DNA of 64,000 nt from Macrostomum lignano (taxonomy: Eukaryota): the NCBI GenBank assembly GCA_002269645.1, contig NIVC01000037.1, forward strand, positions 310,001-374,000. Reading direction: 5' to 3'. The position numbers were made by a program, and so were the translations under genes. The notes under the pieces were generated by a model, which was not told the DNA's origin, made no database searches, and worked only from the letters and a program-made list of their open reading frames with translations. Below, in pieces: positions 11,601-43,050 of this stretch. Positions within the stretch are counted from its first letter, which is position 1. Each line of letters starts with the position of its first letter.

Positions 11601-11602
11601 GC

Positions 11603-17550: not shown

Positions 17551-20500
17551 TATTGAGCTGCTGCCCGAGCAGAGCTGGGACGTCAACTTAGCCTTCTGCA
17601 GAGAGGACGAGCGCCCCCGGACCAAGAGGCATCGAATCTGGGTTCCGGCCAGGAGCGTCGTTACCTCTGCTGACGAGCTCCGGAAAGGACTGCTAGCAGT
17701 CAACCGGGAGCTTCCCGCCGCGGGCCTAGTGGTGCATGACACCCTTAAGCGCACCGACAGCACTGGCTTCACAGCCATCCTGGGGCTGTCGGACGCCTGG
17801 ATGAGGCGTTATCCACACGGCAGCTTCATCAACGTCGGCCTTTGGAAGCTGCGCATCCGCTCCTACGAGGCCGACCCTCCCCGTGGCAGTGAGCAGGGCG
17901 GGGGGGATACGGAGGCGACCGGGGCAGGCGCGAGCTTTTGCCCAGGCTGCCAAAGCACGGCCGCGCGGGTAAAGCTGAGCGCGCTGCTGAGGGCGGAGGC
18001 GACCGACGCCCGGCGCGCAGCACCAAGCGGCGCGGCCTGTACCAGCGCGCAGCTGAGGCGGTCCGCACCGCTAAAGTCACCCAGCTGAGGAGAGAGGTCG
18101 CCGGGACGCCTAGGCGCACCAGTTCGTCCAGGGAGGGTGGGGACGTCCCAGCTGGGCCCAACCCATCGGGGCAGGGCCAACTGGCGACGGACCCGCCTGC
18201 CCAGGCGGCTGGCTGCTCCAGGGCATTGGGCCAGTCTGAAGCGGAGGACCCCGTGGCCGGTGGGCGAAGGGCGGCGAACGCTGCCTATTGCCTTCCGACC
18301 AATCGGGGGCCTTTTGCTGAAGAGGAGCCCATGGACACCGGCGACCCCGACCCGAAGCTGGTGAGCGCCGAGGAGGAGGAGGAACTCCTGGCGTCTGCAA
18401 CACCCGATCTGCAATGATGCCAGCGGCTACCTGGTGTCTGCAGATCAACACCCAGCACTGCGTGGCGGTGTCAGTCAACCTGATGCGCACGACAGAGCAA
18501 CAGCTTCCGGGCCTGGTCTTCGTGCAGGAGCCCTGGATGACTAAAGGTAAGCCAAATAATGTGCCATCTGGCTACCACTGTTTTTGCATGGCGGACTCTC
18601 AGCCTCGCCCAAGATCTCTGGTCTTCGCTGCAAAAGCTTTTGAGGCATGGATGAGACCTGATCTCTCGACTGGGGACATCTGTGTTGTTCAAATCAAAAA
18701 CCTCATTCCCAATAAACCTGTGCTGGTAGCATCTGCCTATTTCCCAGGCGATGCCCCAGTAGTCTGCGACGCACTAGTCAACCTCATTGACTACGCCGAG
18801 TCCCGTCGGTTTGAGCTGCTCATTGCAGGGGATGTGAACGCACACCACCTGCATGGGGCAGCAGGAACACCAATAACAGAGGCGAGGAGCTGCTGGCATA
18901 TGTCAGCAGCACTGACCTCAACTTCCGTAACGTGGGCAATGCACCAACGTTCAATAATGGGCGGTGAGCCGAAGTCATCGACACCACCATCGCCTCACCC
19001 GGACTGCTTTCCGCAGTTACGGGCTGGCGAGTGTGGGACGAGGACTCGCTCTCGGACCACCGCTTTATCCGCTTTTGCATTGGGCTGACCAAACAAAAGC
19101 CTAAGGTCACTTGGTGTCGGAACGTCAGAAATTCCGATTGGGCCGCCTTTGGCTCGAAGCTGAGCCGAGGCCTTCGGGATCTTGACCCCCCCCCAGTGAC
19201 CTATCTGACTGCCAGGTGGTGGATGATCTTGCCTCCTCCCTGGGCGGGGCGATCACCACTGACTTTGAAGCAGCATGCCCTCTAGAAGCCTACAAAGGCA
19301 AGAAATCTGCTCCCTGGTGGAACCCAGAGCTCGGGTCCCTTCGGCGCCGAACCAGGACCCTCCAAAGGCGAGCGCTCAAAACCAAAGACCCATCTGATAG
19401 AGAGGCCTATACCCGTGCGATCCACGAGTTTAAGGGCCAAGTTAAAAGGGCCAAGACGGCCAAGTGGCGCCAATATTGCGAAGGGCTGGAGGGCTCCCGC
19501 CCCGTAGCCCGCGTGGTTAAGGCACTCACCAATGACCGTTTTTCTAAACTCTCTGTTGTGAAGAGACCTGATGGCTCGGTCACAGAGAGATCTGAAGAGA
19601 CTCTAGAGCTAATACTCAACAGTTTCTTCCCTAAATCTCCGACTCAGCAGGGCCAAGGCGAAAGCAGGGCCCCCTGCTCTCAGGCGAAAGCAGGGCCCGC
19701 CTGACCAAACCATGGGAGGGCAAGACCTAGCAAAGTCTATGATCACCAAAGACCGCATTATTAGAGCGGCAAGGTCCTTTAACCCGTTCAAGGCCCGATA
19801 GCATCTACCCAGCGTTCTTGCACGAGGCGGTAAAATACCACCGCTTCCTGGACCTCCTCTGTCGTCTCCTCCGAGCTTGTGTGGAGCTGGGCTATGTACC
19901 AGTTGCGTGGAGAGAGGCCTTGGGTGGTCTTTATCCCCAAGCCTGGAAAGAGCGACTACCAATCGGTGAAGGCCTTCAGGCCTATCAGCCTCACCTCCTT
20001 CTGCCTTAAGCTCCTCGAGAGACTGGTGCTTTGGCGCCTACTTTCGGTCGAGCTGAAGCGCTTCCCACTCTCGCAGAACCAGCACGCTTTCCGCGCGGGC
20101 AGGTCTACCGAGAGTGCCCTCCATGTCATTGTTGACTTCCTGGAGAGGGCCGTTCTTGGCAGCGGTTTTGCCCTCTCGCTTTTCCTGGACATTGAGGGGG
20201 CCTTCGACAACGTCATCTTCGAGGCCTTTTGCAGAGCCCTGGAATCCAGGGCCACGCACCCTCGCCTTGTCCGGTGGATCATGTTCATGATCCGGAACCG
20301 CACTGTTGTGGCCCACCTGAACGGCAGCTCTCTTTCGGCGCCTGTCCAGAAAGGGGGCCCCCAGGGCGGAGTTCTCACCCCCGTTCTCTGGAACATGGTC
20401 ATGGATGAGCTGCTTTGCAGTGATCTCCACGACCCCATTCTCAAGGTGGGCTATGGCGACGATGTGACCGCGATATGTGCGGGCCCCTCGGTTGATACCA

Positions 20501-21388
20501 TCAGAGATCTTCTGCAGGGCTTTCTGGGACGAGCGGAGCGTTGGGCAAACCAATGTGGCCTTAGACTCTCAGAGTCGAAAACCACAGCGGTCATGTTTAC
20601 CAACAAACTGCTCTGTACCATTAGGCGCCTCACCCTCTATGGAAAGGATATTTCCATGGAGAAGCAGGTCCGCTGCCTGGGCCTCACTCTGGACCACAGG
20701 CTTAACTGGACTCCGCACATCAAACTAAAGCTAAAAAAGCCCTGGCTGTCCTGGCTCAGATCAGGCGCGCCGTAGGCACCACCTGGGGGCTCACCCCCAG
20801 GAAGCTGTGGTGGATTTACACTGCCATCATCCGCCCCTCGGTCAGTTACGCCAGCCTCGTGTGGGCCAGCGGCCTGAGCGTCAAAAGCAACCTCGACGCT
20901 CTTTTACAAAATCCAGGGCAGAACTTGCCGCATGACTCTGGGCGCTCCACCCTCTACTCCTTTTGAAGGCAAGAATGCCTTCCTCTGTGCCCCTCCTCTG
21001 GATATTTATATCAAAGGAGGTGGCGAAGAGCACCCGGCGTCTTCTAGATGCTGGGGTGGCCTTCAAGAAAGTGCGGGCCTTTAAGAAGCAGTCGCTTTTC
21101 CCGCACTCTGACCTCTGCCTCAAGGCTCTCGAGGAGTGTGGCGGGCTCAACATCCTCACGGACTCGATCCCAGCCACCCTTCTCCTAAGCCAAAGGTATA
21201 AGGTCACTATTCAGCCTCGACACGAGGCGAGTGACAGCTGGAGCGATTCTGAATTCCACTGTTACACTGACGGCTCTATGAGGCATTGTCTTTCAGGCTT
21301 CGGAGCTTGCGTCTTCTTCAAGGGAGAAGTGGTGTGGAGCTACTCCCAGCACACTGGGCTCAACTCAAGTGTTTTTCAGAGCGAGGTG

Positions 21389-24300
21389 TGCTCCCCCAAA
21401 AGTAGAAAAACAAAATACAAAAAAAACCAAAACCAATCCTTAGACCTTATAACAAACAGGTTTACGAGGCCGCAAATCATACGAGCTGTGGGGCTGGAAA
21501 GTCTCATCTCCAGAACTCAGCCGGGAGTCACAGTCAGTCACCTCAGGTTCACGCAGCTCCGAGTCAGAGCCAGCCTTGGCACCCAGATGAATCGATAGCC
21601 CAGCCTGATCCTCGGATCCAGCCGCCTCGGTCAGCCGCCGATCGGCCTCCGCCTCCAGGCGGCAGCTCCATTGGTTTGCGTGCGCCATCCGCAGTCCACC
21701 ATCTGGTAGGTCAGCTGAGGTCACCAGAGCTGTGTTCCGGCCGTGCTGCACGATGAACTTGGCCGGAACCGGAGCCGTGCCAGGCCGAGCCCTCAGCCAG
21801 ATGGAATCACCCACCTGCTCGGTAATCGTCAGCGGATGGCGCAGCCGGCGTCCCCACATGAGAATGTCCGGCGAACTGGAACGATTCCCGCTAGGCCTGC
21901 TGGTGCGAATGGTTAGAAGCAAATTCTGCAGGAACTGGTCAAATGGGACCACTTTCGTCCACGTCTTCAGCCCGCCTTTGAGACTCCTCACCAACCGCTC
22001 AGCCTGCCCGTTCGATGCCGGATGGTACGGTGGGGTGTGCATCTCCTGGTAGCCGACACTGTTCAGCCACTGCGAGACTCTTTCCGACCTGAACTCAGGC
22101 GCATTATCCGACACTAGCGTCCGAAGCACTCCATTTCTGGCGAACACCGCTCTCAGCACTCTCAGCACACTGCCCGCAGACCTGTCTGGGACCTGGACAG
22201 CTTCTGGCCAACCCGAGTATGCATCAGACAGCAACAGTAGCAAGCCCACTCCTGGCACCTCACAGTGGTCCATGTGGACCCAGGACCACGGCTCGCTCTC
22301 GGATGGCCAGATGTCAATTTTCCGCTGAACCACCGGCCGTCTTTCAGCGCACAGCTGACACCGCTCAACAAACTGACGGACATCGCGAACCAGTCCAGGC
22401 CACCAGAACTCCTTAGACACATGGGCCTTCGTATTTTCCGCGCTCGGGTGCACCTCATCATGCGCGGTCTCCAAAATGCGCCGCCGGAGAATGATCGGAG
22501 GCACCACCCTGGTACCGTGGATGACCAGCCCGTTTTCCACAGACAACGCTTCCCGACACGCTTTGTACGGCCGCTCCAGCTGAGAGACCTGACCCCACCG
22601 GCCTGTCCTGATTCTCTGCTGGAGTCTTTAAAGCAGTGAACACCGGGAAGTACTTTCTCTCAGCTCCTCCACGGTAACCAAGCCTCCGTCAGTGATCAAC
22701 TCAGTCTGGTGAACCGACTCCGTCTCAGGATCGAGGTTTTCAAAGCTCAGCCTTGATAGAGCGTCAGCATCCTGCATCTTCTTTCCCGGCACATATTCAA
22801 TCTCGTAATCATAAGCCGATAGCCGCAGAGCCCACCGGGTTAGTCTGGCAGAAACAGTCTTTGGAAGATTCATTGCAAGGATTCAGAATAAACTTCAAAG
22901 GCTCGTGATCGGTCTGCAGAATGAATTTCTTCCATAGCAACATTTTCCGAGCTCGTTCAACCGTCCAAACAATAGCCAGCGCTTCTCTCTCGATGTTTGA
23001 GTAGTTGGTTTCTGCCTGTGTGAGCGCCCTGGACATGAACATGACGGGATGTCCAGACTGGACCAGCACCGCGCCCAAGGACTCTCGCTCGCATCAACTC
23101 GAAGACAGACAGGCGCGGAAACATCCAACGGCTTGATGCACGGGTTTGAGGCCAGACTCCTTTTGACCTCCGAAAATGCCGCCTCAGCCACCGCGTTCCA
23201 TTCAAAGACCCGGTCACCGCGGCGAAGCTCCTGAAGAGGCCGACATTTCTCAGAAAAGTTTGGAACCAGCCGTCCATAAAATTGAGCCAGTCCTAGAAAT
23301 CTCTCCAAATTTTTCTTGGTCTTCGGCACCTTGACATCCATCACACGTTTCACCATGCCCGGATCGGGTTTTATTCCTTCATCATCAATAATGTGACCAA
23401 GAAACTTCAGGCTGTTGGCCTCCATCACGCACTTCGCTTCGTTGATCTTGACATTTGCGGCCTTTAACTTGTTGAGCACCTGCTCCCTAATTTTCTGCAA
23501 CTCTGCCCGGCTCGCAGCACCGATCAGCACATCGTCCTGATATACTATGACACATGGATGGTCTCCCAGGAGCTTTTCCATCACACGTTGAAAAACAGAT
23601 GGCGACACCTTAATGCCATACGGCAACCGGTTAAACCTGTAGCAACCAAACGGAGTGTTTATGGTGGTCACCGCTTTCGATTCCTCATCCAGGGGAACCT
23701 GATAGTACGCATCCGATAGGTCTAACCGACAGAACAGCTTCTTGTTGGCCATTTTCGAAAAGGCTGTCTCAATCGAGGGAGTGAGGTTCGGTCTGGTCTT
23801 GAACCAACCGATTAACAGCCGAATAATCTCCACAAATTCTCACGGATGCCCGATCTGACTTCACCGTCACCACAATTGGACTGCCCCTTTCCGACGACAT
23901 CACCTTCTCAACGATTCCAGCACTTTCCATCAAGTCCAGCTCCTTCTTAACCAAGTGCTTCAGCGCTAAGGGCAGTTCTCTGGCTGCCTGGAAAATTGGC
24001 TTAGCTCCAGCACAAAGACGGATCTCTCCCGTAGCACCAGATATTCCCAACAAGCTCTCATACCTGTTGCTGGCGGCTGACTCATCAGAACTGGCATGGT
24101 GCACCGGTGCGAGGACCAGCAGATTCCGGCCGAGCAGCCTAAACTCCTGTTGGCAATCGATGACGGGCAGCTCTGCCGCCTTGAAGCGGCCGTTGTTGCC
24201 AGTGGTCTCCACCAGGCATTCCAGAACGCCCATCTGTCTCATAACGTGTCCGTCATACGCCAGCATGCGCGACTTCGCCGACTTCAGCGGGGGCCTTCCG

Positions 24301-25599
24301 AGCTCATTCCAGATCCTTCGTGAGATTAACGAGCAGGAGGCACCGCTGTCCTTCTCCATCAGCACTTCTCTGTGATTGATTTTCACAGTGCAGAACTCGG
24401 CAGGCTTTCCTTCTCCACAGTAGAATACGGGCTCATCACAATAGGAGTCTTCTGGACTCAGCTGAGTGCGGACTGCTTCAGCTGGGGCAGCGAAGTGGGT
24501 CCTGGCACCGCGGCACACACGGGCAAAGTGGCCAGGCTTTCCACATTGATTGCAGGTGGCTCTCAGGGCTCGGCAGTCAGCGGGCTTCTGGTGCGATCTC
24601 AACCCGCAACGCTGACAGCGCTGGTGTCCGAAGTTCTGCTTCTGCCTCATAACCGAATTAACGTTGGCAGAGCCGGAGCTATCCGGATGGCAGTGAGCTT
24701 CATTAGCCGTAGTCAGACCCGCGGTTGACAGCGACCTAGCCTGGTGCACCACCGAATCCACGAGAGTCGAGTGAGCAGCAGCCAGGGACCCAGCTGAAAA
24801 GTTGCTGACCATCAGCAGCTGCTGAACATATTCTGTGACCTGATCGACCGTCAGTTCTTGAGTCACTTCACGTTCGAGCACCTTGTTCCTGATGATGTCA
24901 GTTGGCCAGACCGGCAATGAGCCGCATCTTGATGAGCGCTTCGGCGGGGTCCGCTCCTTCCTTTTTCAGGCTCTCGAACTCGCATACGACGGCTTGCTCC
25001 CTGAGACGAGCGGCATAGCTGGTGACGGTTTCGCCTTCGGCCTGGCGCATAGACATGAAGGCTGTCCTCTTAGCGATCTGCAGTTTCTTCTTGGGCTCCA
25101 CAAACGTCAGTAGGCATTGCTTGATTTCAGACCATTTCATCTCAGACGGGGTTTTTGGAGCAACCAGCTGCTTGACTTTTATGAGCTCAGCGACCCCGAG
25201 GCAGCCCATGAAAGCGTCGGTCAACGCTCGTCTCTCGTCGGTATCTTCGACTCCTTTGGATCTGGCCTGGGCGTCAAATACTTCAACCCAGGCGCGAAGC
25301 TCATCTATGTTGCTCAACGGCAGCGTCTCTTTCAATTTGGTGCTCATTATCCTGCTTGCGACGCCAAAATGTTAGTCTAGGAAAACTGAGTCAAGTCATG
25401 TTTGCAAGCGAAGGAGAATACCATTGAAAGATCTCTACCGAAGTGACGAAAGTATTTATTTGACTACATAACACGAATCCACGTACATTAGTAGACAAAC
25501 GCCATCCGATTGGCTGGGGGTTAAAACCATGCACACTGGCAAGCACAAATGTACACAGGTAGGGGTAAAACGATAGCGCGCAAGAATGATCAGTCACGG

Positions 25600-25644
<45 letters not shown>

Positions 25645-25680
25645 TGAAACAACATGAAAAACCAAAGTACAACCCCAACA
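21389..25680 (-). mobile_element. Ty3/Gypsy LTR retrotransposon (Mag-like gag-pol) with a single LTR, inserted in the LINE RNase H
   Basis: gag from 25347 with two CCHC-type knuckles (CQRC..H..C, CNQCGKPGHFARVC), protease DSGASCSLI, RT LDLSDAYYQ..YQDD, RNase H VDAS..YSNIEREALAI..TDH, and integrase H..H..WWPGL..C..C, D..D(NAPEF)..E. 5-bp TSD AGGTG at 21384-21388 and 25681-25685. Frameshifts are present. Confidence 0.95.
25370..25680 (-). repeat. 5' LTR (311 bp) of the Gypsy element; tRNA-Ser-like PBS at 25350-25366
   Basis: On the element strand the LTR reads TGTTGGGG...CTAACA and contains a (CT)n tract. It is followed after TTT by TGGCGTCGCAAGCAGGA, complementary to a tRNA-Ser-like 3' end, just before the gag ATG. 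Confidence 0.85.
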
Positions 25681-26766
25681 AGGTGCTTGCCATCAGCTCC
25701 TGCGCGGCAGAGCTGCGCCGAAGGCAGCTTAGCGGTCGGAAATTTATTTTTCACTCTGACAGCCAAGCAGCCCTTCGGGCCCTCTGCCGCAGCAACACCA
25801 GCTCCAGGTCCGTCCTGGACTGCAACACCCAGCTCAACGGGCTTGCGCTAGGCAACCAGGTGGAGCTCAGATGGATCCCGGGCCACGCGGTTTCCTCGGC
25901 AACGAGCGCGCTGACCTGCTGGCCAAGGCTGGCTCCGCCGGCGCGCTGTTAGGGCCAGGCCCGGGAGCCCCCATCCCCGCCTCGGTGATCAACTCCCGCG
26001 TTAAGCGCTGGACTGACTCCGAGCATCTCCGCAGGTGGCACGACACCCGGAATTGTAGGCAATCCCGTGCGGCCGTCCCCTGCCCCTACCCTCTCCTGCG
26101 TAGAGCCCTCCTCAGGCTCAACCGCAGACACCTCAGAGCAGTTAGCATGGCCCTCTCCGGGTATGGCTGCTTCTCTCGCCACCGGTTCCTTCAGGGCCAA
26201 GTACCCGAGGAGCGGTGCCCCTTCTGCCGCTCAGGCAGTGAAAATGCCGAGCACTTTATCTGCCACTGCCCTGTCTTCACAACAAGGCCAGGTTCACTCA
26301 CCTCGGGCCAAACCCGGTTCTCTCCGACGTTTGCAGGCCCGAGAGCATCCCGCTGCTCGCCCGGTACCTCAGGGACACGGGACGAGCTGATTTCTTCTCC
26401 ACCGTCGGTGAGGAGGACCGCGCTGCAGGCGAGACCGACGGGTCCCCCTGAGCGAAATCACTTCAACGGAAGTCATTGGCCTGGTCGCCAGGGGCTAGCG
26501 GAATGGGTGGTCCCCTCCGCCTCCTCGCTGCATCCGTCGGACGCCCCCTGCAGCTAAGTCAAGTAAGTCAAGTCATTGGTGACTATCTTCTTGCACACAA
26601 ATGCAGTGGTCCATATTGTCACAATTAAAATCGAGCATTGAAAAATTAACTGAATGCAACTTCAATTTCTACTCTACCATTCTGCGGCGCATTGAGTTAA
26701 TATGCATCACAACACAATAGACAAAAAACTCAATCGATTGAATCCAAATGAGATAATGTACATGCT

Positions 26767-26965
26767 CAGGGACGTCGCCATGGATTTTATGGTGGGGGGG
26801 GGACAAATTAAGCCAAGAATTCGACATGGTACATCTACATGACTAAATTGTGGCACTCATTTTGGCGCCGCAGGCACTCATTTTGGCGCCGCAGGAATTC
26901 CTTTTAGCGCCGCATGCACTCATTCTAGCGCCACAGGCACTCATTTTGGCGCCACAGGCGCTATA
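26767..26965. mobile_element. hAT-like MITE end with 5 copies of a 21-bp repeat
   Basis: CAGGGACGTCGCCATGG..poly-G start and (GGCACTCATTTTGGCGCCGCA)x5 at 26853-26960. The partner end was not found. Confidence 0.35.
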
Positions 26966-27908
26966 TTGATATAACTGGCGCGAGCTAACAAAAAACCTTA
27001 AGTAGCATATTACAACTTTTTAGCCGCATTGTGAATGACCATTTGAATGGAACACTCCTTCACTGTTCTTATCATGGTGTCAGAGGGTTTGGCTGCGAAG
27101 AAAATTTCTAGAAGTTCAGCTTGCATAATTAGAGTTTCTTTTGTTCATTGTGCATGTACAAACAATGCATACAGCATATATCCTACACTTTCGCAGCAAA
27201 AAGTGCAGTGTATAAAAGACTCAGTATAAAATACGATTCAACCGAGATTTTTCATGTTTAGTCGCTTTAACAATTGTTCTTATTGTCTCAACATTAAGCA
27301 GGTGAGACTAGTACCGTGAAAAAGCATATATGTATATGTGTGGTGACTGTGAGGCTTACCACTTTGGCTTATTTTGAAATCGGAGTAAACATGCAAACTC
27401 AATGCAATGGATGACAAATTACCGCCCTGTTTCAAACCCTCCCCCCTCATATGTCACCGAACTGACTGTCGCCGAATTGCCTGTCGCCGAGTCAACCAGC
27501 TGTCGCCGAATTAACTGGTTCCCTGATTTGTCTTTTGGTCTAAATCGCCTTATGTCCATCCACTCGATCACTTTGCTAGAAGTTTTATTGAGGTGTCAGG
27601 TGTGAAATACCAAGTACTAGTTTTTTGTCTACAGACTGCTCACCAGACCAGACTGCTCTACAGACTGCTCAGTACAGAGACAGATGTCAGTTTAAAATAA
27701 AAACGGCTTGCCAAGCGGGCTAAAAATTGTCAGTTTAAACAAAATGAATGTGGCTTTATATCTAGTATGACAAGAAACTGTTTAAAAAAGGCTTATATGT
27801 ATTTTTTTTAACAATTAATGTTATATGTATTAATCTATACGTAAATACGAGCTATTACAATCGGCACGCATGGGTTAACCAAAATTAATTTCTGTCCACA
27901 CGTTATGG

Positions 27909-28172
27909 GGCCTTTTCATATTGCTTGCTCTGGTTCCAGAACCAGAACCAATTTGTGAAGTATAACTTTTTGTCTCCATAAGTAGAGGGAGATACGTGCT
28001 ATAAAGTTTATATTATTGAATGACAATCGCCACGAAGAAAGTGGAAAATTGTGCTAAGTGAGGTTGTTAATGTTAAGGCAATCAAATATTCAACAGAATT
28101 AAATAGTAATACTGCTGTTTTTCTTGGAATTCCGAACCGATTCTGGTTCTAGAATCGGTAATATGAAAAGGG
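27909..28172. mobile_element. Small MITE (PIF/Harbinger-like TIR)
   Basis: GGCCTTTTCATATT..GGTTCCAGAACC and GGTTCTAGAATCGGTAATATGAAAAGGGC are imperfect inverted repeats. Confidence 0.45.
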
Positions 28173-28214
28173 CTAATATCCTCCAGGCCTGTGCAAGCTG
28201 CCTCCCTCCGTCTG

Positions 28215-31200
28215 TCTGTAAAGCTATATTCATATTTCCTATGTGCCTACATTAAGGATGTCAATGGAGGTAGAGGTTTAGATTGTGAGCAGATTTTAGC
28301 AATATAAGTGCATAAAACATTTTTAAACATGGTCTACTTTTTCTGATAATTTAAATATACTAAATATATATACTATAGACAGTAGACTATAGCTAAGATT
28401 GCATAACAAGCAGAGTACATACATCCCAGAAGTGATTGTTATATCTAATTTTCACAAAGTTTTATTTTTTTATTTCTCATGAGCCTAAATGCTATCAAAA
28501 TCTAGCATCAAAATATATTATGTACTTTCTACTAGTACTATATAGATGTATAAAGTTGAGTATCTAGATACAGTTTATATCATTGAGTATTAATTATCTA
28601 ATGACTAGGCCCTTCAATATTTGCATTGAACTCTACACTTCACATAATGAATAAAGTTTAGAATTAAAATTGAAACCTTTGTCAATTCTTAGACTCAGTA
28701 CAAAAAGTTTTATATTTTCAAATAATAATTTATTTTTTTAAATAATAGCCAAAACAAGAGCCATTTATAATAAATAATAGTCAAAAGATGCAAGAATTTT
28801 CCTTATAGGGCCTATATATAGTATATATGGCATATAATATGCCTAGCATTCTTGGCAATATTAGGTAATAATCTTGGTAATTATTTTTTATCTGAATTTA
28901 ATAGACATTAGGTCTAAGGCAATTTCATTTATAAAAGGCAATGACTATTTATTCGTTATTGGATGAATAACATAATTATTATTTGTCTGGTACTGGATAA
29001 ATAAAAGTGAAGTTATTTGTCCAGCATAGTATGGATGTGGATATATAATAAAAACTTGTAAAATACAAAAAACTCAAAAAAGTATATATAGTTCACTTTT
29101 AGGCTAGAAACAGAAAATATTTGTTATGATTAGATAGTGTATTTCTTAGAAATTCTAGAACTTTAGGCAAAAAATACTTGGGCATAGTCTTATATGTCAT
29201 TGCCCAATCTAGTAGATTGTAGCTCAGAACTTGAATCAAATTAATTTTTCCTTATGCTAATATTTATGTAGACTTATCTTTACTTATCTTCTTATCTTTT
29301 ACTTATCTTAGACTTATATTCTAACTTCGCTATTGCTGCTAATTAAGATTATATAGTTTTCAGTCTTATTGTTTATTAAAGTTGCATTTGTAATATCATG
29401 TATGTATGTGTGTATGTATACTTATAAATAGTATGGCTACAACTTTCTGAATACTTCTGAATTTTGAAAGTAGGAGTACAGATATGAATGCTAATTTACT
29501 CCATTTTTTGCAGTTTCAATTGCTTTATCTATGACTACTGTTGTTTTTTAAAACTATTGGCTAAAGAAATCATTGCCGCTATTATCTTGGCTATTGAATA
29601 ATCATTCTCTTCCCATACCTATATTTGTGTAAAAACATGCCAAAAGTGTTACATATCTTCAGGTAGTACATTTATACACAAGTAATATGCATATCTTTGC
29701 AATATAGCTAGGACCATAGAGTCTACCCTATTGCAGCCAATGGCCATTGCTATTATTGTAGACAGTGTTTAGTGCAAATTCTCTTGGTAGTATAGCTATA
29801 GGCATAGTCTAGTGTTATTTAGTATAGAAAAAAGGCAAAAGAGGTGTCTGGCATGGTTTAGACCTTAGTTGCTATAGGAGTCTTGTCTTAGACTTTGAAG
29901 CAGCTGTATAACAGATGGTTTGCAAGATCTAGCTATTGGTCACTATAACTGGCTGTAAATTTAAGGTGCATATGCATACTACATATAAAAAGCCCAATGT
30001 ATTCTATATAAAAGCAAGTATACATATAGACCATATTGCAGCCAAGGTCTAAATTTTATTAAACACCCTCTTTCCTATGCCAAACTGCACTAGCATACCA
30101 AACTACACCTATATTACTGAAGGCCAATCTATTCTAAATATTATCCAAGATAATAGCCATTGACTGCAATAGGGTATATAAATGCTATATTTTTCATATG
30201 ACAATACATATACAAATACACAGTGATTAAAATAGTTTAATAGTTTGCAACCAACTAGGCAGTGAAAGACTTTCTAAAGCAGCTAATGTTAATTTGCTGC
30301 CTTTTTTGCCTAGTCATTCACACAGCATTTGGCTACTTGGTGCAGCAAATGTAGGACCAATGGGTGGACCACATATATAAATATATCAAAGCCACTTGGT
30401 TGGACCCCCTGATTTGGAATATTAAAGATGTTAGCATCCATAATAAGCAGAGCATATGGACAAACAACAAGGTCAAAGGCTAGTGCTGTTATTTGAAGAC
30501 ACATGTACAGAGGCCAGCTATAGCTATATATGCTTCTAGAGTTGCTCTATAAAGAGGCTTTGTTGGCAGATGTGCAGGCCTCTTTTTTTATAGACATCTT
30601 TATAGGCAAAGAAGGCATCTCTTATAGATGTCTAAATAAATTATAGCTAAGTAAACTAAAACAATATACAGTCAAATGTCTTGTTTAAAGACATTGTTCC
30701 AATAGGATTGGAAATTTAATCCCTAGTCTTCAAGTTATGAGTTTTATAAAGCATTTGCATAATGATATAATAGTGTAAATAGTAATAGTATAATAACAGT
30801 ATAATAATATATATATGGCTATATGGCTATATATGCCATATATGCCATATATGGCTATCCTGGCATATATGGCTAAGAGACCAAGGGATAAAGAATGCCT
30901 AATGGCTTAATAAACTAAAAGCCAAGGGTTTACATACAAAAAAAATTAATCATGGCATATATACAAATATGTTTTTTATATGCCAATATGCCAGTTCAAG
31001 GGTGCCATAGATCATGTTGCATGCATATATCTATACACAAAAATAACATCTATAATTAAAAGGTATATATGCTTGTATAATATATATTAATCATCTTAAT
31101 CTTTTTCCCAAAATCCAAAAATGATCATATTTGACTTTCATTGCTAGATAGACTCTTAGACCCTAAAAAGCACCTTAATAGAAATATATAGCCAACTAAA

Positions 31201-32345
31201 ATTCCAAGAATTGCCTTTCACCCTAGAATTAGTATAAAAAAGCTTGGAAATAAAATACCCTAAAGGCTAAGGTTTCTAAAAAGACAGCATCCAAAAAGTC
31301 ATCATTACTAAGAACTAAAATAGCAGAATACTAACCTCAAGAGAGATTTTGCATCTCAAAGGGAAAATTGGCAATAGTCAAGATTATAAAAATCTGATAA
31401 ATCTAATATTTGAAATTCTATTAACCAATCTGCAAAGCATAGTAATAAAGGTCATAACTTAGTAACTATTTTGGATTCACTTTTGTAGTAATTCTAGGTC
31501 TTAGATATCAATATATCTTATCTTAGTGACAAAGCTTCTTTAATCAACGAGTCTTTAAAACCTTTAAAAGTGAAATAGCAGGTACCAGGGTAACAGATAA
31601 GTAACAAGTGACAAAAATAAATAGGTTGCTATATCAGATGAACAATTTCTTGTAATCAAGCTTGCTGAGCATTTCTGTGCTAACTTTCTACTAATATACA
31701 CTTATTAACACCTTCAAACCTGCTGGCTACTCTGCAGCCAACTGCCATCTGCTGAATGCCCACAATAGCTGTCTGTGGCCAGCACAAGTGGCACCTTGCC
31801 ACTTACTCTGAGAAAACCCACTGTGGCTACAGAGCAGCCATCAAATAAACAACACTTTTTTATACACAAGCTCATTAGGTTGAATCTATGGATAATACTT
31901 TGCAGCTATTAGGGTTTTCTAAGAGTGAGTGCTGTGACTGCTTGTGGGCAGACGCAGATGTCTGGCTACTGCAGTCAATGGGTTTTCTTAGAATGAGTGC
32001 AGAGGCTTGAGGTACAGAAGTGGTTAAAGGCTTGCAGTCAACTAGGCTTCTTTGCAATTAGTTAAATTTGGTAGGAATTTGAAAATATTACTATAGGTAT
32101 CAGTATATATTACATTGTTGAAACAATTATAAAAATTCAAATGGATTTAATAAAGCTATCCTAGTTTACAATTAAACAAGTCAGTGTATAGTTTCTAGAT
32201 TCATGGCTCTAGGATTCTATAAAGAGACCAGTTGATTGCTGGCAGTAAACATTATTGTAAACCAAATGGAAAATATTTCATCTAGATTCTATATATTCAT
32301 GAACTGAGCCATCAAACCATACTACTTATTAGCATATGAATTGAA
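28215..32345. other. CpG-void, TpA-enriched block
   Basis: About 5 CG seen by eye in ~4.1 kb, including moderately GC-rich stretches (31700-32050). Hand count for 29701-29880: CG 0, TA 25, AT 16. Confidence 0.85.
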
Positions 32346-35300
32346 CTTTCGAACCTAAATTTTGACAAAGCAATTATTTTGTTTTGGTCTTTTATAGTCT
32401 TTGTATCCTGTGAACTAGGTCATATCCAACCAGTTGACTTAGACTTCTGTGTTGTTTTTTGCAGTGGCAGAAAATCGTTTACTGTTCTGTCATAAGTACC
32501 GGTATATACATTGTGTACATAACTGTACCTGTACTCATACATGCGCAACAGTCGGCCGAGTCGGCCGATCCGGCCGACCGATTTGGCGGCCAACCAAGGA
32601 AGTCGCAAAAATGCCCACCCGAAAACGCCCACTACTTAGTATTAGTACTAAGTAGCTGACGAGGCATTTTGACTTAATAAGACAGTCATAGTTACTCTTG
32701 CCGTTTACCCAAAGTTACGTTAATTTTTTTGTTTTTTTTACATGTAAGTCGCATTTTGGCCAAAAACTACGTCGCATTTTTGTTAAAACTAAGTCGCAAG
32801 GCCGACCGAATTTTGGAGGTTGCGCATGTATGCCTGTACTGCTGATTAATTGGCTGGCAGTCACTTTTTTGTCAGCAATTTTGGCATTGCAGACCCTTGT
32901 CATTTTTAGACTTTTTAGTATATGGATAGATATTTAGACTTTGAATGTCAATTTTTTGTATAAACTTCTTAGCACAAGATAAGAACGTGATAAAATTGAT
33001 AAACTGTTTGCTCTAAAAACTTTCCTGGTTCGACGCCTTGTATTTTAATGTACAAAATCTAAGTCGTCTAAAATGAGTAAGTGTTTGCAAACTGTCCATT
33101 TTACGTACCTGGCCTAGACATTCCTATTCTAACGTGTGCATGGGTGCTGCCCCTGCACTGTTTGGGTCGTCAAACGACCGCTAAGGGCACAGGCAGACTG
33201 TCTAGCTTGGTCTGCACTGCACATTAGCAAATGCAATGCAAGCCTCTTGGCCCCTCCCTTTGTCCGTCTGGGTGAGTCACAGCAGCAATGAGTGTTCTTT
33301 TATCGAAAAAGTTGGTATAGCAGTCTAGTCTAGACTATAATATAACAGCAACAAAATACGCAACCCAGATAAGTAAAGCCACGCCATGAGGTCAGGGTGC
33401 GTCAGATGGCGCACCGCAGCGCAAGCAAGCCAACGGCGTCGCTTAGCAGGTTAAACTATATGGACCCTAGGTTAGTGAGCACTGAGCAGCAGTAGAACGT
33501 CCTGTACCCTGTCGAGGCTGGAGGTAGTATATAATAATATAGACTATTAATCAGATAAAGGTCCCTAAACCATTGTCATTTTTTCCCGATGCCGATACTT
33601 ATGTACCCTCAGTTTCATTTTTGTGTTTTCTCAAAGTAAAAAAGCCTGCGTCATCCAGTACTGTCTAATTTTAGCACTTCCCATCTACCACAACACAGCC
33701 CGCTGCTGTTGGAGGAAAGCTAGAAGTAGTTAATCACTGCTAATAATACCTTATAGTCTTGGCCTTGGAGAAGCAGAAGACACGACTAGACTAAGTTGTA
33801 TATGCTATAATACTAAAGTATGTGCAATACGATCCAGGGGCCGTGGGTCTGGATTGGATTTGTGGGCCCTCTCGTACAGACTTTGTTTTGTGGACTAGTC
33901 TCGGCCCTCTGTAGGGTCCCTCTGTCTGTCTGTCGGTTTGTTAATTTAGTCTGCTTAAAATGTTTAACCGGGGGTCTTGTCTGTGGACTGTGACAGATAT
34001 AGCTTGTGCATTGTATTTGTTATTGGCGCTGGCCTGGACGGTTTATAAGAAAAATTGGACGTTTCGCACTGGTTCAGTCTGCCCCGAGGGCCCCGGCGTT
34101 CTCGGCTTCTTGCTTTCTACCTGCCGGCTGTCGTCGCTTCTTTTGCATACGCCTAGGGTTCTGGGCCCCCCAGCCGCCCTCCTCACCCCTCTGGCCCGGC
34201 TTTTCGCTAAGCTGTGAAGGCAAGCGAAGAAAGGGTGCTGGAGTGGTGAGGGCTGTCTGTCTGTCTGGGTCCCCGTTAAGGCCGTACCGTATGCGTCAGC
34301 TCTGGGTGGGGGTGTAGCCCCACCCTCCGCGCTTGTCTGAGAATATAAAACGAGTGCCCCGGACGCGGCTGCTTTTTTACCAATTGGGGACAACACACAG
34401 ACGAGAGATAGAAAGAGAAACAGGAGGACGCTCAAATAAATCCAACGTGTCCTTTCCCTCAGCCTTCAGACATTTTATTAGGTCCTGATTGTAAATGCGC
34501 GGCAGCATTTTTTCAAAGAACAGCCCCGACAGGTGAAGTGAATTCGCAAGGTATTTTTTCAAGTGAGTTTTTTGCCAGCTCGTTTCGGCTTATTACGGTT
34601 GATGTTTTCCGTATTTCATCTAGGTTTATTAATAGAATCTGACGTCAGTGTAGCGGGGGCGGGGGTAAACCCTCCCTTCAAAATCTGTCCCCTTGTCCCG
34701 TTTTCCGAAATTTCCCTTGCCACTTCGTCGTTTCTTGAACTCTCTTCCCAATCCCAATGTTCTGTCTTTCTGTCCCCGTGTTATTCGCGCTGACAGTCGC
34801 CGCCAGTAAACCTCACTCCACACACAATGCAGCCACTGCTAGATTCCCTAGATTATATTAAGACTAGAGAACCGGCAAGTCGCGCTGCCGTGCATAAATT
34901 GCTGGCAATGGGAAGCACTGAGAGGGGGGTTGAAATGAATTTTGATCCGCTCTTAGCCAATGCCATGCCTATTAGGCTTGGGGTAGCTGCTCTGTGGTTC
35001 TATCTATAAATGTACTGCTTTAGCCTCCAAGCAGCCATTTGCTTCGCGGCGTCCATTCAACCTCCTCTCCTTCCCCCCAGATCTCTTTCCTCCCCTCTAA
35101 CTCTTCCTGTCCCTGTCTGCCACATTTCCCCTTTTTCCCTTCCCAGCCCAATGGCAAGTCCCTTCAGCCCCGAGCAGGCCGCTAGGGGACTTTATAAAGC
35201 CCCTAACTTTGGGGCCGTCAGCGCTGTTGGAATTAAGGATTTGCTAGTGGAGAGCGAGAGAGCGGAAAAGCGGTGGCAGGAGGCCCGTCATTCACTGCGA

Positions 35301-37932: not shown

Positions 37933-40110
37933 CAATGTAAAGAATCAGCGGTCGCAGCACGGGACAACGATTTGTCTATGGCTCGCGCCTACCGGCGCTC
38001 GCCAGACAATCGTTGCAAGGACAACTTGATAACTCAGGACCGGAAACGAGCCAATTCATGGCGAAAAAAGTATGAGGCTCGTTTAAAAGCATTGTTCTAT
38101 GGCCCATCCGTATGCGCATGCTTTCAGTTGCCAATGTATACTCGTATCATATTTGAATTTTTGATAGGCAGTCAGAAGGCGGCTGCAGGGTCGGTTTTCT
38201 TAAATGTTGAATAGTTTTATTGCATGTTACGCAGCATCCCCAGAGCATTGCTTCAGGGAAGTAAAACTCGCCAACGACAGCAAACAATTTCCGCACTCGC
38301 AAAGCACATGACGGTGATCGCAGCGAAATGAAGCATCCGAAACAGAGGCAAGCAAAATTGAACAGCCACTTACCAAGAAGAAAAATCGGTATCAGCCTTA
38401 GAACAAATGACTTACCGCCGAACAATGGCTTCAACATTATTGCGAGCACTGTTCGAGCAGTTTTGTTATGATTGTCTGACGCTTGGCCGAGCAGATGTTG
38501 GCACCGATAGCGAATCGATGGCTGCACATACATTTCATCGGAAATCAACACACAAGACTTATGCTGCGGTTTCGGTTTGGCAAATGTGACCTTTACGATC
38601 TCGTGTGCATCATTTTCAGTGCCAATCTCTCCTAGACCAGCCAACTGAGTGCGTAATGTGCCTTGATGGGGCAAGGAAGGAGCGTCTGTGCATGCGCGTA
38701 TGCAGAACTGCTAATCAGATAAAGCAAAGCAGATTGGCGCATAGTGGCAATGTCGTATCGTCGATTGTTTGGGTGCGTTGTGGCGAGCTCGAGTAGCTTC
38801 AGGATGAATGTAACCGATGTGTCCGGTACAACTCCATCGTGGTTAAAGGCAATAGAAAGGTTCTTAGATAATGCCCTCAACTCACTTTCGACGTCCACTG
38901 TAGAGTTTTTACAACGATTTATGATAGCTTCAAGTTGCGACCAATACTTTAATGTTGGTTGAAATCCAAGCAGATCTCAAACCGCAACTGGTGAGTGTAA
39001 CCGAAAGCATCGCACGGAATAGTTTGGTGAAACGAAAACTCGCAGAACCATTTCGGCATTGGTGCTTAACGAGAAGATAAACACCTCCTCTTGAACAATG
39101 GTAACGATAAGCTGATGTGCTTTGATGACGTCTAAACAGTGAATGGATGCTCGGAATTCAGTCCACGATGGCAGCGTGTCACGCTCTCGAAATTCTACTA
39201 GTTCATCTTGGAAAAGGCATCGTTCGGACAACAACACGCCCCTTCCCTCAGCCTGTCGACTGGCACGCACTGCAATATCCAAGCACGCATCTTAGTGTTT
39301 CGTTTCGACCCTATTTGATGGAGTGCAAATACGCTCGAATATTTGAATTAAAGCAGTAGAAATTCACAAACTTTGTGTTTGAACGAGGCAGGACTGCGGG
39401 ACTCCGTCGAAAACTGATGGTGGATGTAGCGGCCTTTCATTTCTTCCCTTTTTTATCATTGGTGCATCTTGAGGCCAGTGCTTAGCACACACGCCCATGT
39501 AGTCTGTCACGGTCTAAACAACAACAAAATTGTTAATGAATTCATGTGGCCAGGCTAAATCTGATTCACAAAGCACATTTGAAGAAAGTCTTACCGTCAG
39601 TTGATTAGGCAGTGACAGTCGCCAAGCCTCTCGTTCAGTTGCATCTTTAGGAAACGAAAGTCTTACCGTCAGTTGATTAGGCAGAGACAGTCGCCAAGCC
39701 TCTCGTTCAGTTGCATCTTTAGGAAACGAAAGTCTTACCGTCAGTTGATTAGGCAGAGACAGTCGCCAAGCCTCTCGTTCAGTTGCATCTTTAGGAAACG
39801 AAAATACTGCAACATTCCGATCACGGTTGCTATTTTAGTTTGCACAACAGAAAATGACGCTGAATTTTCTCGGCATGATATTTAGTTTTAGCAAGAATAA
39901 AAGTTCTCTCTCTCAAATGCAAGTGCATGCGAAGAACTCAATTTTCAGCTCAGATTTCTTCGCTTTTGTAGCTTTGGATGGGCCATGGAACAATGCTTTT
40001 AAACGAGCCTCTTACTTTTTTCGCCATGAATTGGCTCGTTTCCGGTCCTGAGATATCAAGTTGTCCTTGATCGTTGTCACGCACTGGGACCGCTGATTAT
40101 TTATCCATTG
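37933..40110 (-). mobile_element. Internally deleted P-superfamily (THAP, Galileo-like) DNA transposon with long TIRs
   Basis: TIRs at 37933-38109 and 39976-40110 (CAATG..AATCAGCGGTC..GACAACTTGATA.CTCAGGACCGGAAACGAGCC..GGCCCATCC). Minus-strand remnants include THAP-like VCAKHWP (~39490), RRYDIATMRQSALLYLISSSAY and CVLISDEMYVQPSIRY..ARTVLAIMLKPLFGGKSFVLRLIP. The catalytic C-terminus is missing, and no TSD was found. Confidence 0.8.
39585..39802. repeat. Tandem repeat, ~72-bp unit x3, inside the THAP element
   Basis: GAAAGTCTTACCGTCAGTTGATTAGGCAG..CATCTTTAGGAAAC occurs three times. Confidence 0.9.
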
Positions 40111-40201: not shown

Positions 40202-41196
40202 TCTATTAAACTTCGGATTAGTCAAAAGTGAGTTCAAATTCGTCAGCGTATGCAAAACTATATAGCGCTCAATCAAGGGGAAGAGATTGAGTGTCTATGG
40301 TAATTTTTTAGAGAAAGTGACTTCGAATTCGTCTAAGTAAGTAAAATTCGTCAGTGCAAATACAGCCTAATCAGAAAAAGTGTTTGCTTTGTCCATGGTA
40401 AGAAAAGAAGGTGTCTATGGTAAATTTAAGTAAGAAAGTGAGTGAATTTCGTCTGTGGAAAGTAGCCCAATTTCTTGAAACCTTCATTTCATGCTTTGAT
40501 TGTTGTCAGAGATGCCCTACATGACAACAAACAGTCAATGTAACGCACAAAGTCCCGTCAAGCCGACGACTGATTGCCTGAGTTGTCACAGCAGGAGCAG
40601 CAGGAAAATCTGCAACAAGCTTTTGCTGCATTTCTTTGAGGGTCACAGTCGGCTTCTCTTCCACATACCTGGTCAACGCCCCGAGCATCTCCTCAGAAAA
40701 CTTTAGTCTCACTGCACCTCCATGCGCGTTAAGATCAATCCTACCCTCATCAACATATCTCTTGATGATGTCACTGGCAGTTGTCCTCTTGATATCCAGT
40801 TCAATTGCGAGTTGTCTCCAGTCTCGTCCTTGTTGAAAACATCGCACGAGTCTAGAGCGATCCACAGACGAAATTCTCATGTAGGGCATCTCTGACAACA
40901 ATCAAAGCATGAAATGAAGATTTCAAGAAATTGGGCTACTTTTCCACAGACGAAATTCACTCACTTTCTTACTTAAATTTACCATAGACACCTTCTTTTC
41001 TTACCATGGACAAAGCAAACACTTTTTCTGATCAGGCTGTATTTGCACTGACGAATTTCACTTACTTTGACGAATTCGAAGTCACTTTCTCTAAAAATTT
41101 ACCATAGACACTAATTCTCTTCCCCTTGAGCGCCATATAGTTTTGCATACGCTGACGAATTTGAACTCACTTTTGACGAATACGAAGTTGAAAAGG
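40202..41196 (-). mobile_element. Tc1/mariner(IS630)-like foldback derivative with ~320-bp inverted arms
   Basis: Arms 40202-40522 and 40877-41196 are near-perfect inverted repeats, each flanked by TA. Both include the transposase 5'UTR and ATGCCCTACATG. Confidence 0.85.
40506..40901 (-). CDS. Truncated Tc1-like transposase, DNA-binding (HTH) region only
   Basis: MPYMRISSVDRSRLVRCFQQGRDWRQLAIELDIKRTTASDIIKRY..HGG..KFSEEM..YVEEKPTVTLKEMQQKL..TTQAISRRL is a paired-like/homeodomain-like HTH. There is no DDE domain. Confidence 0.7.
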   Translation of the reverse strand: MLSEMPYMRISSVDRSRLVRCFQQGRDWRQLAIELDIKRTTASDIIKRYVDEGRIDLNAHGGAVRLKFSEEMLGALTRYVEEKPTVTLKEMQQKLVADFPAAPAVTTQAISRRLDGTLCVTLTVCCHVGHL

Positions 41197-42097: not shown

Positions 42098-43050
42098 AGA
42101 CCTGACTTAGCTGCAGGGGGCTCCGGGCATCCGGGTGCAGCGGAGAGGCGTTGACGCCCATTCCGCTAACCCATGGCAACTACGGGCAGCTAGTGCTGCG
42201 GTGTCGCGCAGGGAGATCCGGTGGTGCCGGTGTCCGCCGGTGGTGCCGGTGTCCAGGAGGTGGATGGTCGCTCGCCCGGTTGCCCTAAGGTAGCGGACGA
42301 GCTGGCAGAAATTCTCGAGCCTGAAACTGTCAAAACGGTCCGGGTTTGGACCTGTCCTGAGTAAAGGCGGAGCATTTACAAAGTGCTCCGCATTCTGAAC
42401 ACCGGAGAGGCAGAAGAGGCATTCATTAATGCGGATTTTTCCCTGGGTTTTTCCCTGCTTTGCAAAACAGCCATTGCTTGAGAGGGCCATGGTTACCGCC
42501 CTGATGTCCCTGCAGTTGAGTCTAAGCAGGGCCCTGCGGAGGTCGGGTGAGGAACAGGCGACAGTCGCGCGCGATTGCCGGCAGTCGGGGGCGTTATCCC
42601 ACCTTTCTGTGCTTAGATGCCACCCACTGGTTAATACGAGTCGTGACAACGGCTGGTGGGGTGGGGGACATAGGCAAAGGAATCATTAAAAGACCCGATC
42701 GAGCCAGCCTTGGCCAGGCCATCGGCTGACTCGTTGCCGGGGTGGCCCAACTGCCCGGGGATCCATCTTAGAGACACCTAGTTGGAGGCGCCTAAGCGGT
42801 TACGCTACGCGATGCAGTCGAGAACTGTACGTGAGCAGGTGGTGATGCGCTTAAGGGCGTGGATCGTCGCTTGGCTGTCTGAGTGGAGGGTAATCTCCTT
42901 CCCCCAGCCTCATTGATTGTACGAGAATAGCTCCATGGCGAAGGCGCTGACGGCGAGCAGTGCGTGCGCAGCATTCCAGCTTCGGTGGCGACTCTGATTG
43001 CATGTAACTCTTGTAGGTCACGTGATCCGGACCGCGTTATATCCATGCCA
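42098..43050 (-). mobile_element. Degenerate 3' fragment of a related LOA/I-group LINE
   Basis: RNase H remnant ITLHSDSQATIHAL..TVLDC..SLRWIPG and the segment [39 protein letters not shown]. It shares the 3' end CCCCCTGCAGCTAAGTCA with the copy ending at 26571. Confidence 0.88.

Follow-up and report, generated by a model that had tools for sequence, protein, structure and literature searches.

How did a 4-kb block of an animal genome come to lose nearly all of its CpG dinucleotides, and did it lose them by the one-step decay of methylated CpG or by a RIP-like process that would also attack CpA? The question is raised by positions 28215-32345 of the window, i.e. of the whole 64-kb stretch of Macrostomum lignano DNA analysed here (assembly GCA_002269645.1, contig NIVC01000037.1). 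An initial annotation had put forward localized hypermutation, either methylation-driven or RIP-like, and had supposed that C>T mutation took place at CpG and probably also at CpA.

A CpG-specific void in complex, AT-rich DNA

Dinucleotide counts gave exactly 5 CG in the 4,131 bp of the block (positions 28954, 29328, 29577, 31548 and 31953), where about 5 in about 4.1 kb had been announced. This corresponds to a CpG o/e of 0.05, and the longest CG-free run, from 29577 to 31548, extends over 1,971 bp. Under a null built on local base composition, with the background o/e set at 0.8, the Poisson probability of finding 5 CG or fewer is ~6e-28. GpC has an o/e of 1.78 in the same DNA, so that GpC is spared and the deficit is specific to CpG: the loss is indeed localized, extreme and CpG-specific, as proposed. 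By comparison, CpG o/e is 0.94 when the AT-rich, CpG-normal DNA of the window is pooled. The stretch 13741-14100, which had been cited as CG-rich, is CpG-dense, with a count of 22 instead of about 24, and the segment 31700-32050 is, as described, richer in GC and almost CG-free (Table 1).

The block is complex sequence, with 89% of unique 8-mers, against less than 30% in the CpG-free runs made of tandem repeats at 1-917 and 47978-49198. TRF detected only four arrays within it, of 37-63 bp each, and a CpG-free tandem repeat or low complexity was thus ruled out as the cause of the void. Among its internal structures, the palindrome has terminal arms of 25 nt that are 92% complementary, and the GC-richer segment contains an inverted repeat (31800-31823 / 31976-31999).

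No ORF of the block exceeds 64 aa, a six-frame Pfam search (E<=0.1) returned no match, and no terminal repeats or TSD were found that would bound the block as a unit. A decayed TE or coding remnant was rejected on these grounds. A mitochondrial insertion (NUMT) was rejected as well, since the longest ORF under genetic code table 9 has 78 aa, no tRNA was detected in a default ARAGORN run, and there was no Rfam match. No second copy of the block turned up within the 64-kb window, nor within four further loci (~70 kb) of M. lignano, whose genome underwent a recent duplication.

Table 1. Positions, strands and supporting evidence for the features of the window.
Feature	Positions	Strand	Evidence
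TRIM-NHL-like gene, directly downstream of second block	RING domain 10503-11627, NHL repeats 6312-8023	minus	
Second complex CpG-void block, same compositional class	11750-13431		3 CG vs ~41 expected
Repeat cluster AATTCGGCGAC	14064-14125		inverted relative to cluster 27454-27518
CpG-normal LINE (endonuclease, RT)	17893-26575	+	Pfam RVT_1, Exo_endo_phos, rve, Integrase_H2C2, RT_RNaseH_2, Asp_protease (LINE and Gypsy-type element together)
Gypsy-type LTR element interrupting LINE	~21443-24965	minus	Pfam matches as listed under LINE
Repeat cluster GTCGCCGAATT	27454-27518		reverse complement of cluster 14064-14125
MITE-like inverted-repeat element adjoining left edge	27904-28178		38-nt arms, 71% complementary; 6 CpG
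Core of the CpG void: non-coding, complex sequence, AT-rich (GC 0.31)	28210-32350		5 CG vs ~100 expected
Degenerate 453-bp palindrome inside block	29724-30176		self reverse-complement alignment, E ~1e-12
Palindromic (TATGGC/GCCATA)n microsatellite	30811-30873		TRF period 9, 7 copies; self-complementary
GC-richer (0.46) near-CpG-free segment with short internal inverted repeats	31700-32050		1 CG, o/e 0.05
CpG-poor extension of block, split by MITE 32536-32832	32351-32985		CG distribution
Young MITE, 297 bp, hAT-like by TSD length	32536-32832		TIRs, TSD, 22 CpG, GC 0.45

Dinucleotide balance and the absence of a RIP signature

A RIP-like process is expected to deplete CpA and TpG, bringing (CA+TG)/(AC+GT) below ~1.03, and to raise TpA/ApT above ~0.89 and above its value in unaffected DNA. 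Over the whole block the first index is 1.38; per kb it ranges from 1.15 to 1.63, and the core value of 1.63 is the highest among the listed non-tandem AT-rich (GC<0.42) 1-kb windows. The composite RIP index is negative (-0.03 to -0.63). The TA/AT ratio, ~1.06 (0.99-1.16 per kb), is similar to that of the CpG-normal AT-rich DNA at 2.5-5 kb and 13-14 kb. Hence neither the depletion of CpA/TpG nor the excess of TpA/ApT is present, and the RIP signature is absent from the block. The hand count reported for 29701-29880 (CG 0, TA 25, AT 16, and 21/19 for the (CA+TG)/(AC+GT) ratio) was reproduced exactly, but the RIP-like step at CpA found no support in these figures for the whole block. The TpA enrichment also claimed proved weak: with an o/e of 1.10, the block exceeds the 0.6-1.0 seen over most of the window, but its TpA o/e drops to 1.03 once (TA)n is masked, and the second CpG-void block described below has a value of 0.96.

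The mass balance is compatible with another chemistry. About 89 CpG are missing from the block, for an excess of about 84 TpG+CpA; in the second block, the deficit is ~36 and the excess ~33, the background ratio differing by segment (0.83-1.38), which makes this a test of consistency and not a proof. As the TpG+CpA surplus is close to the number of missing CpGs, it fits the prediction of methyl-CpG deamination, and so does a deficit restricted to CpG (o/e 0.05, against 1.78 for GpC), with a gain of TpG/CpA of similar size in both blocks. The other half of the proposal, C>T mutation at CpG, is thus in agreement with the counts.

Borders, neighbours and a second block

The nearest CG on either side of the block lie at 28209 on the left and 32350 on the right. 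These positions agree with the sharp return of CpG noted initially at both edges, but on the right the sharpness is produced by a MITE, with perfect 14-bp TIRs (CATACATGCGCAAC/GTTGCGCATGTATG) and an 8-bp target-site duplication, CCTGTACT, at each end. Outside this element, only 3 CG are encountered up to 32985 (32350, 32476 and 32500), and density is normal from 32986 on. Since the CpG-poor tract reaches ~32985 once the MITE is discounted, the right edge is not truly sharp: it results from the insertion of a young CpG-rich MITE. On the left, the MITE-like element has a possible TA duplication.

Most of the window consists of TEs and tandem repeats. The LINE and the Gypsy element had been described as intact-looking and CpG-rich; with o/e values of 0.65-0.86 they are not CpG-depleted, but they are nested and their frames are split into several ORFs. 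The view that CpG loss is not a general property of TEs here holds, the neighbouring ones being unaffected. We rejected the stretch 13432-28209 as a single transposon: it has no matching termini, TIRs or TSD, just the internal inverted AATTCGGCGAC clusters. A nest of DNA transposons may separate the two CpG-void blocks, with the cluster at 14064-14125 as one of its ends. No match was obtained in a homolog search with the 3' ORF of the LINE, nor in an exact look-up of the ORFs of the window in the annotated GCA_002269645.1 protein set. A concatenated multi-ORF query, dominated by Gypsy, returned mostly Gypsy candidates and no M. lignano protein. As for host genes, the adjacent TRIM-NHL gene body is CpG-normal, and the UBTD intron 61912-62748 is half depleted in CpG, its first half (61912-62262) having a normal CpG density.

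The second block (CpG o/e 0.07, P ~4e-11) occupies a promoter position relative to the TRIM-NHL gene. It has no alignable similarity to the first, but the two have a composition in common, with a non-CpG k-mer signature that is absent from other AT-rich DNA. In both, the enrichment is 2-7x for GCCA, GGCC, AGGC, GCTA and CTAG, and 10x for TAGCCA. Their tetranucleotide o/e values are correlated (0.57), and a Markov model trained on one block, with CG-containing words ignored, ranked the other block top. Simulated CpG decay of reference DNA raised the k-mer correlation from 0.40 to 0.46 only. Decay of CGGC/GCCG as the source of the TGGC/GCCA enrichment was rejected, because sibling decay products are highly unequal (TTGGC 25 vs TCAGC 3).

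Substitutions in other M. lignano DNA were obtained from four paralogous loci around a DUF5746/Ly6-like gene, which have 477 bp in common with the window. In the four-copy alignment, transitions affected 2 of 550 CpG sites vs 13 of 2,488 non-CpG C/G sites. Ordinary M. lignano DNA is therefore devoid of CpG hypermutability, and the process is not genome-wide at present. The equilibrium GC* computed from 46 polarised substitutions among the four copies is ~0.35, so the AT-richness of the block is explained without hypermutation. All CpG-void runs in the four comparison loci are tandem repeats, hence uninformative about voids in complex sequence.

Possible origins of the void

We lean towards a reading in which the block and the second block would be old, resident, non-coding and non-repetitive M. 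lignano DNA, the block having reached the AT-rich mutational equilibrium of the genome. Their CpGs would have been removed through single-step CpG>TpG/CpA transitions, which are the mark of 5-methyl-CpG deamination in the germline, with no further C>T change at CpA and thus no RIP. Younger CpG-rich TEs, inserted beside or into the block and too recent to have decayed, would give its borders their sharp look: the MITE with its intact TSD on the right, and on the left the MITE-like element together with the LINE/Gypsy/DNA-TE nest. From the patterns seen in the sequence we infer methylation as the cause of the loss, and an age of the block greater than that of its neighbours. A domain-restricted mutator system is plausible; old DNA stripped earlier and now ringed by younger insertions fits equally well. 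CpG-void blocks would then be evolutionary footprints of past germline methylation.

M. lignano is among the flatworms that retain DNMT1 and DNMT3, the only methyltransferases named for it in the literature (PMC11292947, PMC9246332); its 5mC level is low, and its genomic 5mC pattern is described as unknown (PMC11292947, PMC9246332, PMC10658182). Going by the literature, the host thus possesses maintenance and de novo CpG methyltransferases. Wasik et al. (2015) are reportedly the source to which reviews refer for the M. lignano DNMTs and the low 5mC level. The block resembles methylation-driven depletion, as it occurs in vertebrate bulk DNA and in mosaic invertebrates, by a CpG deficit that is roughly offset by extra TpG/CpA, by the DNMT1 and DNMT3 of the host, and by CpG-normal neighbours that make the pattern a mosaic. 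It differs in that the loss is far stronger (o/e 0.05). It also differs from methylated compartments elsewhere, in that the depleted DNA is non-genic, non-TE and AT-rich, and the adjoining gene body and TEs are CpG-normal.

Some observations sit less easily with the reading that we favour. CpG o/e is ~0.2 in vertebrate genomes and ~0.4-0.6 in methylated invertebrate genes, and the value of 0.05 lies below both. A CpG-normal gene body and CpG-normal TEs depart from canonical invertebrate gene-body or TE methylation. The half-depleted UBTD intron indicates that a CpG void is not universal in old non-coding DNA of the host. Finally, the non-CpG signature of the two blocks was not reproduced by simulated CpG decay.

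Tentatively, the loss may have been targeted: either dense CpG methylation in the germline or an activity that deaminates CpG specifically would be aimed at non-genic, non-TE, AT-rich domains, intergenic or promoter-proximal and rich in TGGC/GGCC/CTAG, sparing gene bodies and TEs. Such a mosaic would be unlike the canonical patterns of invertebrates (gene bodies) or of vertebrates and plants (TEs), and it would explain the low global 5mC, the CpGs of the targets being already gone. If the blocks form a defined compartment of this kind, they would provide a sequence-only map of methylation targets, and the choice of target, unique AT-rich intergenic DNA and neither genes nor TEs, would be unusual.

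Rather doubtful, in our opinion, is a relic of an untargeted process. With the same chemistry as in the favoured reading, heavy genome-wide CpG methylation in the past would have stripped all old neutral DNA before becoming sparse; the block would be the oldest DNA here, and the CpG-normal TEs, minisatellites and selected exons would be younger or constrained. Such a history accommodates ordinary DNA that shows no CpG hypermutability today, borders that coincide with TE insertions, and a window made mostly of TEs and tandem repeats. By a rough estimate using the W>S transition rate of the four-copy alignment, the 5 CpGs of the block are about what regeneration from its 511 TpG/CpA sites would give at a divergence of the order of 1-2%. 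However, the UBTD intron is CpG-normal in its first half, the LINE and the Gypsy element have broken frames, hence are not brand new, and yet keep their CpG, and the methylation would have to have been switched off very recently. If the blocks are merely the oldest DNA of a TE-flooded genome, they would be an age marker, separating resident DNA from recent insertions.

It is unlikely that both blocks arrived CpG-free, or stay so for reasons other than decay in situ. Candidates would be a non-autonomous element, a segment gained by horizontal transfer from a source that is heavily methylated or avoids CpG, or a regulatory or scaffold functional class with TGGC/GCCAAT-type motifs. The k-mer signature common to the two blocks, their mutual ranking by the Markov model and their tetranucleotide correlation are in line with this, as is the inequality of sibling products, by which the TGGC/GCCA enrichment does not stem from decay, and so is the position of the second block at the TRIM-NHL promoter. 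Against it, the two blocks align neither with each other nor with the other sequences compared, the block as a unit lacks terminal repeats, a TSD and a coding remnant, and its ORFs under flatworm mitochondrial code 9 do not exceed 78 aa. Foreign or contaminant DNA, which the initial annotation had listed as a possible outcome, found no backing when prokaryotic genomes, viral contigs and metagenomes were scanned for exact patterns (0 matches). We know of no donor genome that combines a CpG o/e of 0.05 with a TpA o/e above 1, and this too counts against a foreign origin.

An artefact of assembly or consensus, such as long-read miscalls at modified CpG, or a chimeric contaminant join, seems very improbable: the genes of the window are missing from the annotated protein set, but the loss is complete across 4 kb and recurs in the second block, the flanks on the same contig are CpG-normal, a MITE with an intact TSD inside the CpG-poor tract marks a biological junction rather than an assembly join, and the scans just mentioned were empty. 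We give hardly any credence to a RIP-like, domain-restricted cytosine mutator turning CpG and CpA into TpG and TpA, which would account for the void, the AT and TpA richness, the very extreme loss and the sharp change in composition, since CpA and TpG are undepleted, TA/AT and masked TpA are unremarkable, no second copy of the block, which a RIP target should have, was seen in the window or in ~70 kb of other M. lignano loci, and the GC* accounts for its AT-richness.

RIP in animals would have been the surprising part, and it is unsupported whether the blocks are a defined compartment or simply the oldest DNA. With fungal RIP relics, the block has in common that it is AT-rich, non-coding, almost CpG-free and in sharp contrast to GC-richer neighbours; it is unlike them in its CpA/TpG and TpA/ApT balance, in that no duplication of it was seen, and in that its host is an animal. 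In Pucciniomycotina fungi such as Microbotryum, a CpG-specific (TpCpG) hypermutation is aimed at repeated TEs. The likeness there lies in C>T changes confined to CpG, with no CpA step, but in M. lignano the TEs are spared and it is unique DNA that is hit.

The CpG void and its edges

The block (28215-32345) contains 5 CG in 4,131 bp, at 28954, 29328, 29577, 31548 and 31953, and one CG-free run spans 1,971 bp. About 100 CG are expected because GC is 0.31 (o/e 0.05), and against the window's usual CpG o/e of ~0.8 the probability of 5 CG or fewer is ~6e-28. The void reported in the initial annotation is thus real and highly significant. Its side counts were also accurate: we recounted 29701-29880 identically (CG 0, TA 25, AT 16, (CA+TG)/(AC+GT) 21/19), found 22 CG in AT-rich 13741-14100, and only 1 in the GC-richer stretch 31700-32050 (GC 0.46). 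Tandem repetition was rejected as a cause: 89% of the block's 8-mers are unique, whereas the trivial CpG-free runs 1-917 and 47978-49198 are tandem repeats.

The block has no ORF above 64 aa (78 aa with the mitochondrial code). Searches of the block against Pfam (six frames) and Rfam, and for tRNAs, found nothing; no further copy was found within the 64-kb window, and exact block sequences had no match in prokaryotic, viral or metagenomic collections.

A sharp return of CpG had been described at both edges. CpG does rise right of the block, but this rise is a MITE, apparently a hAT-type element that inserted very recently, and the CpG-poor tract resumes beyond it to ~32985 (9 CG in ~4.5 kb in total, MITE excluded). 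On the left, AT-rich DNA containing CpG and TE-type repeat clusters lies between a LINE/Gypsy nest and a MITE-like inverted repeat. The LINE and the Gypsy element, said to be intact-looking and CpG-rich, have normal CpG but broken frames.

The only other complex CpG-void segment in the window, hereafter the second block, holds 3 CG versus ~41 expected (P ~4e-11) and lies directly upstream of the first exon of the TRIM-NHL-like gene.

Features of the window, with strand where assigned
Feature	Position	Strand	Remarks
TRIM-NHL-like gene	6312-11627	-	RING 10503-11627; NHL repeats 6312-8023
Second block	11750-13431
Inverted AATTCGGCGAC repeat clusters	14064-14125 and 27454-27518		~13.4 kb apart; each ~0.6-0.7 kb inward from nearer CpG-void block
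14-bp unit arrays, inverted to each other	15060-15195 and 15811-16059		CAACTGCCAGCCGA / reverse complement TTGTCGGCTGGCAG; foldback-like structure of ~1 kb
LINE	~17.9-26.6 kb	+	left of block; CpG o/e 0.65-0.86; several ORFs
Gypsy element	nested within LINE	-	CpG o/e 0.65-0.86; several ORFs
MITE-like inverted repeat	27904-28178		ends 31 bp before void
Degenerate palindrome, 453 bp	29724-30176		inside block
Palindromic (TATGGC)n microsatellite	30811-30873		inside block
MITE, 297 bp	32536-32832		perfect 14-bp TIRs (CATACATGCGCAAC); intact 8-bp target-site duplication (CCTGTACT); 22 CpGs; interior rich in GTCGGCCGA palindromic repeats
TE remnant	38150-38976	-	weak THAP9/P-element-like transposase RNase H domain
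TE remnant	40509-40901	-	Tc1/mariner/pogo-type HTH (paired-like) domain
Diverged second copy of LINE C-terminal region (25871-26557)	42110-42682	-
DUF5746/Ly6-like ORF	60236-60772		98% identity to M. lignano BOX15_Mlig027592g3
UBTD-like gene	61834-63218		exon 1 61834-61911, then GT donor; intron 61912-62748; exon 2 with UBD domain (Pfam E 7e-38)
Long minisatellite arrays	1-917, 8017-9260, 45235-45955, 47978-49198, 51482-52276, 63291-63958		units 15-52 bp, 16-51 copies

Routes to CpG loss

RIP turns CpA into TpA, and therefore depletes CpA/TpG and raises TpA/ApT. The RIP-like half of the initial interpretation is contradicted: (CA+TG)/(AC+GT) is 1.38 in the block (1.15-1.63 per kb) versus 1.16 when CpG-normal AT-rich DNA is pooled, the composite RIP index stays below 0 throughout, and TA/AT (0.99-1.16) equals that of the CpG-normal AT-rich stretches 2.5-5 kb and 13-14 kb. 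The proposed TpA enrichment is weak: TpA o/e falls to 1.03 once (TA)n runs are masked, and in the second block it is 0.96.

The methylation-decay half is plausible and compositionally consistent. CpG deficit and TpG+CpA excess are ~89 and ~84 in the block, and ~36 and ~33 in the second block; this mass balance fits one-step decay, as a consistency check rather than proof, because the background ratio ranges from 0.83 to 1.38 among segments. M. lignano keeps DNMT1 and DNMT3, unlike planarians and parasitic flatworms, and its 5mC levels are low (PMC11292947, PMC9246332). In the best-supported reading, the block would be old resident non-coding DNA whose CpGs were lost by methyl-CpG deamination, its edges being set by younger CpG-rich insertions. 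This could have come about in two ways: methylation may target this domain specifically, or may have done so until recently, or else the domain may be a relic of once broader methylation, amid younger or constrained surroundings. The phenomenon is of a known kind, a CpG-depletion footprint, on an unusual target class, and the distribution of such footprints in M. lignano has not been described previously.

Substitutions in ordinary DNA were examined in a four-way alignment (~7.4 kb, positions ~1650-10650) of paralogous loci around the DUF5746/Ly6-like gene (L001-L004), 98-99.5% identical across 10 kb or more. The 46 polarised substitutions have an AT-biased spectrum (equilibrium GC, GC*, ~0.35), so that the block's AT-richness needs no special mutator. 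Transitions affected 2 of 550 CpG sites versus 13 of 2,488 other C/G sites; no CpG hypermutability was seen in these copies, so the agent that stripped the block is not genome-wide now.

Several points sit less easily with methyl-CpG decay. Depletion in the block is extreme, the TRIM-NHL gene body and the TEs next to the blocks are spared, and the UBTD-like intron is just half depleted (3' half, 62264-62743, CpG-free; 5' half CpG-normal).

A composition common to both blocks

The two blocks show no similarity upon alignment, and share a distinctive non-CpG composition. Over-represented words, with o/e in the block and second block respectively, are GCCA/TGGC (4.6, 4.1), GGCC (2.9, 6.9), AGGC (2.6, 3.6), GCTA (2.4, 2.2) and CTAG (2.1, 2.5), and GATC is 2.5- to 4-fold under-represented (0.25, 0.41). 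TAGCCA is enriched 10.6x in the blocks combined; TGGCTA/TAGCCA occurs 19 times in their 5.8 kb versus 20 in the remaining 58 kb, with no extended consensus around it. This signature is absent from the window's other AT-rich segments. Tetranucleotide o/e values correlate at 0.57 between blocks, versus 0.07-0.54 with other AT-rich segments, and a Markov model trained on one block, ignoring CG-containing words, scores the other block top.

Simulated decay fails to yield this TGGC/GGCC/CTAG-rich signature, and sibling decay products are highly unequal (TTGGC 25 versus TCAGC 3). Because of the shared signature, the explanation that both blocks owe their lack of CpG to intrinsic composition or functional class survives beside methyl-CpG decay.

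The blocks are separated by 14.8 kb of TE-rich DNA bearing the inverted AATTCGGCGAC clusters. These clusters may be the subterminal repeats belonging to a single large DNA transposon, which now holds the LINE/Gypsy nest; matching termini were not found. As an idea, both blocks may formerly have been one upstream region that a transposon nest split.

Other genes and minisatellites

The 477-bp DUF5746/Ly6-uPAR (QVR) core (60233-60709) is 99.4-99.6% identical to four GCA_002269645.1 contigs (L001-L004, ~10000-10470). Flanks there are unrelated to the window, whose copy has a different C-terminus; in this the core resembles a gene cassette that is mobile or has spread recently. UBTD-like exon 1 encodes MGNCLRGNAEEDV..., resembling an N-myristoylation start.

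Long minisatellite arrays are unusually many; several have units without CG and therefore mimic CpG-void blocks. In the TRIM-NHL-like gene, minisatellites occupy gaps between ORF segments, putative introns (26-bp x 49 at 8017-9260; 31-bp at 7047-7236), and a 39-bp tandem repeat (10736-11081) forms part of the coding sequence of its first exon.
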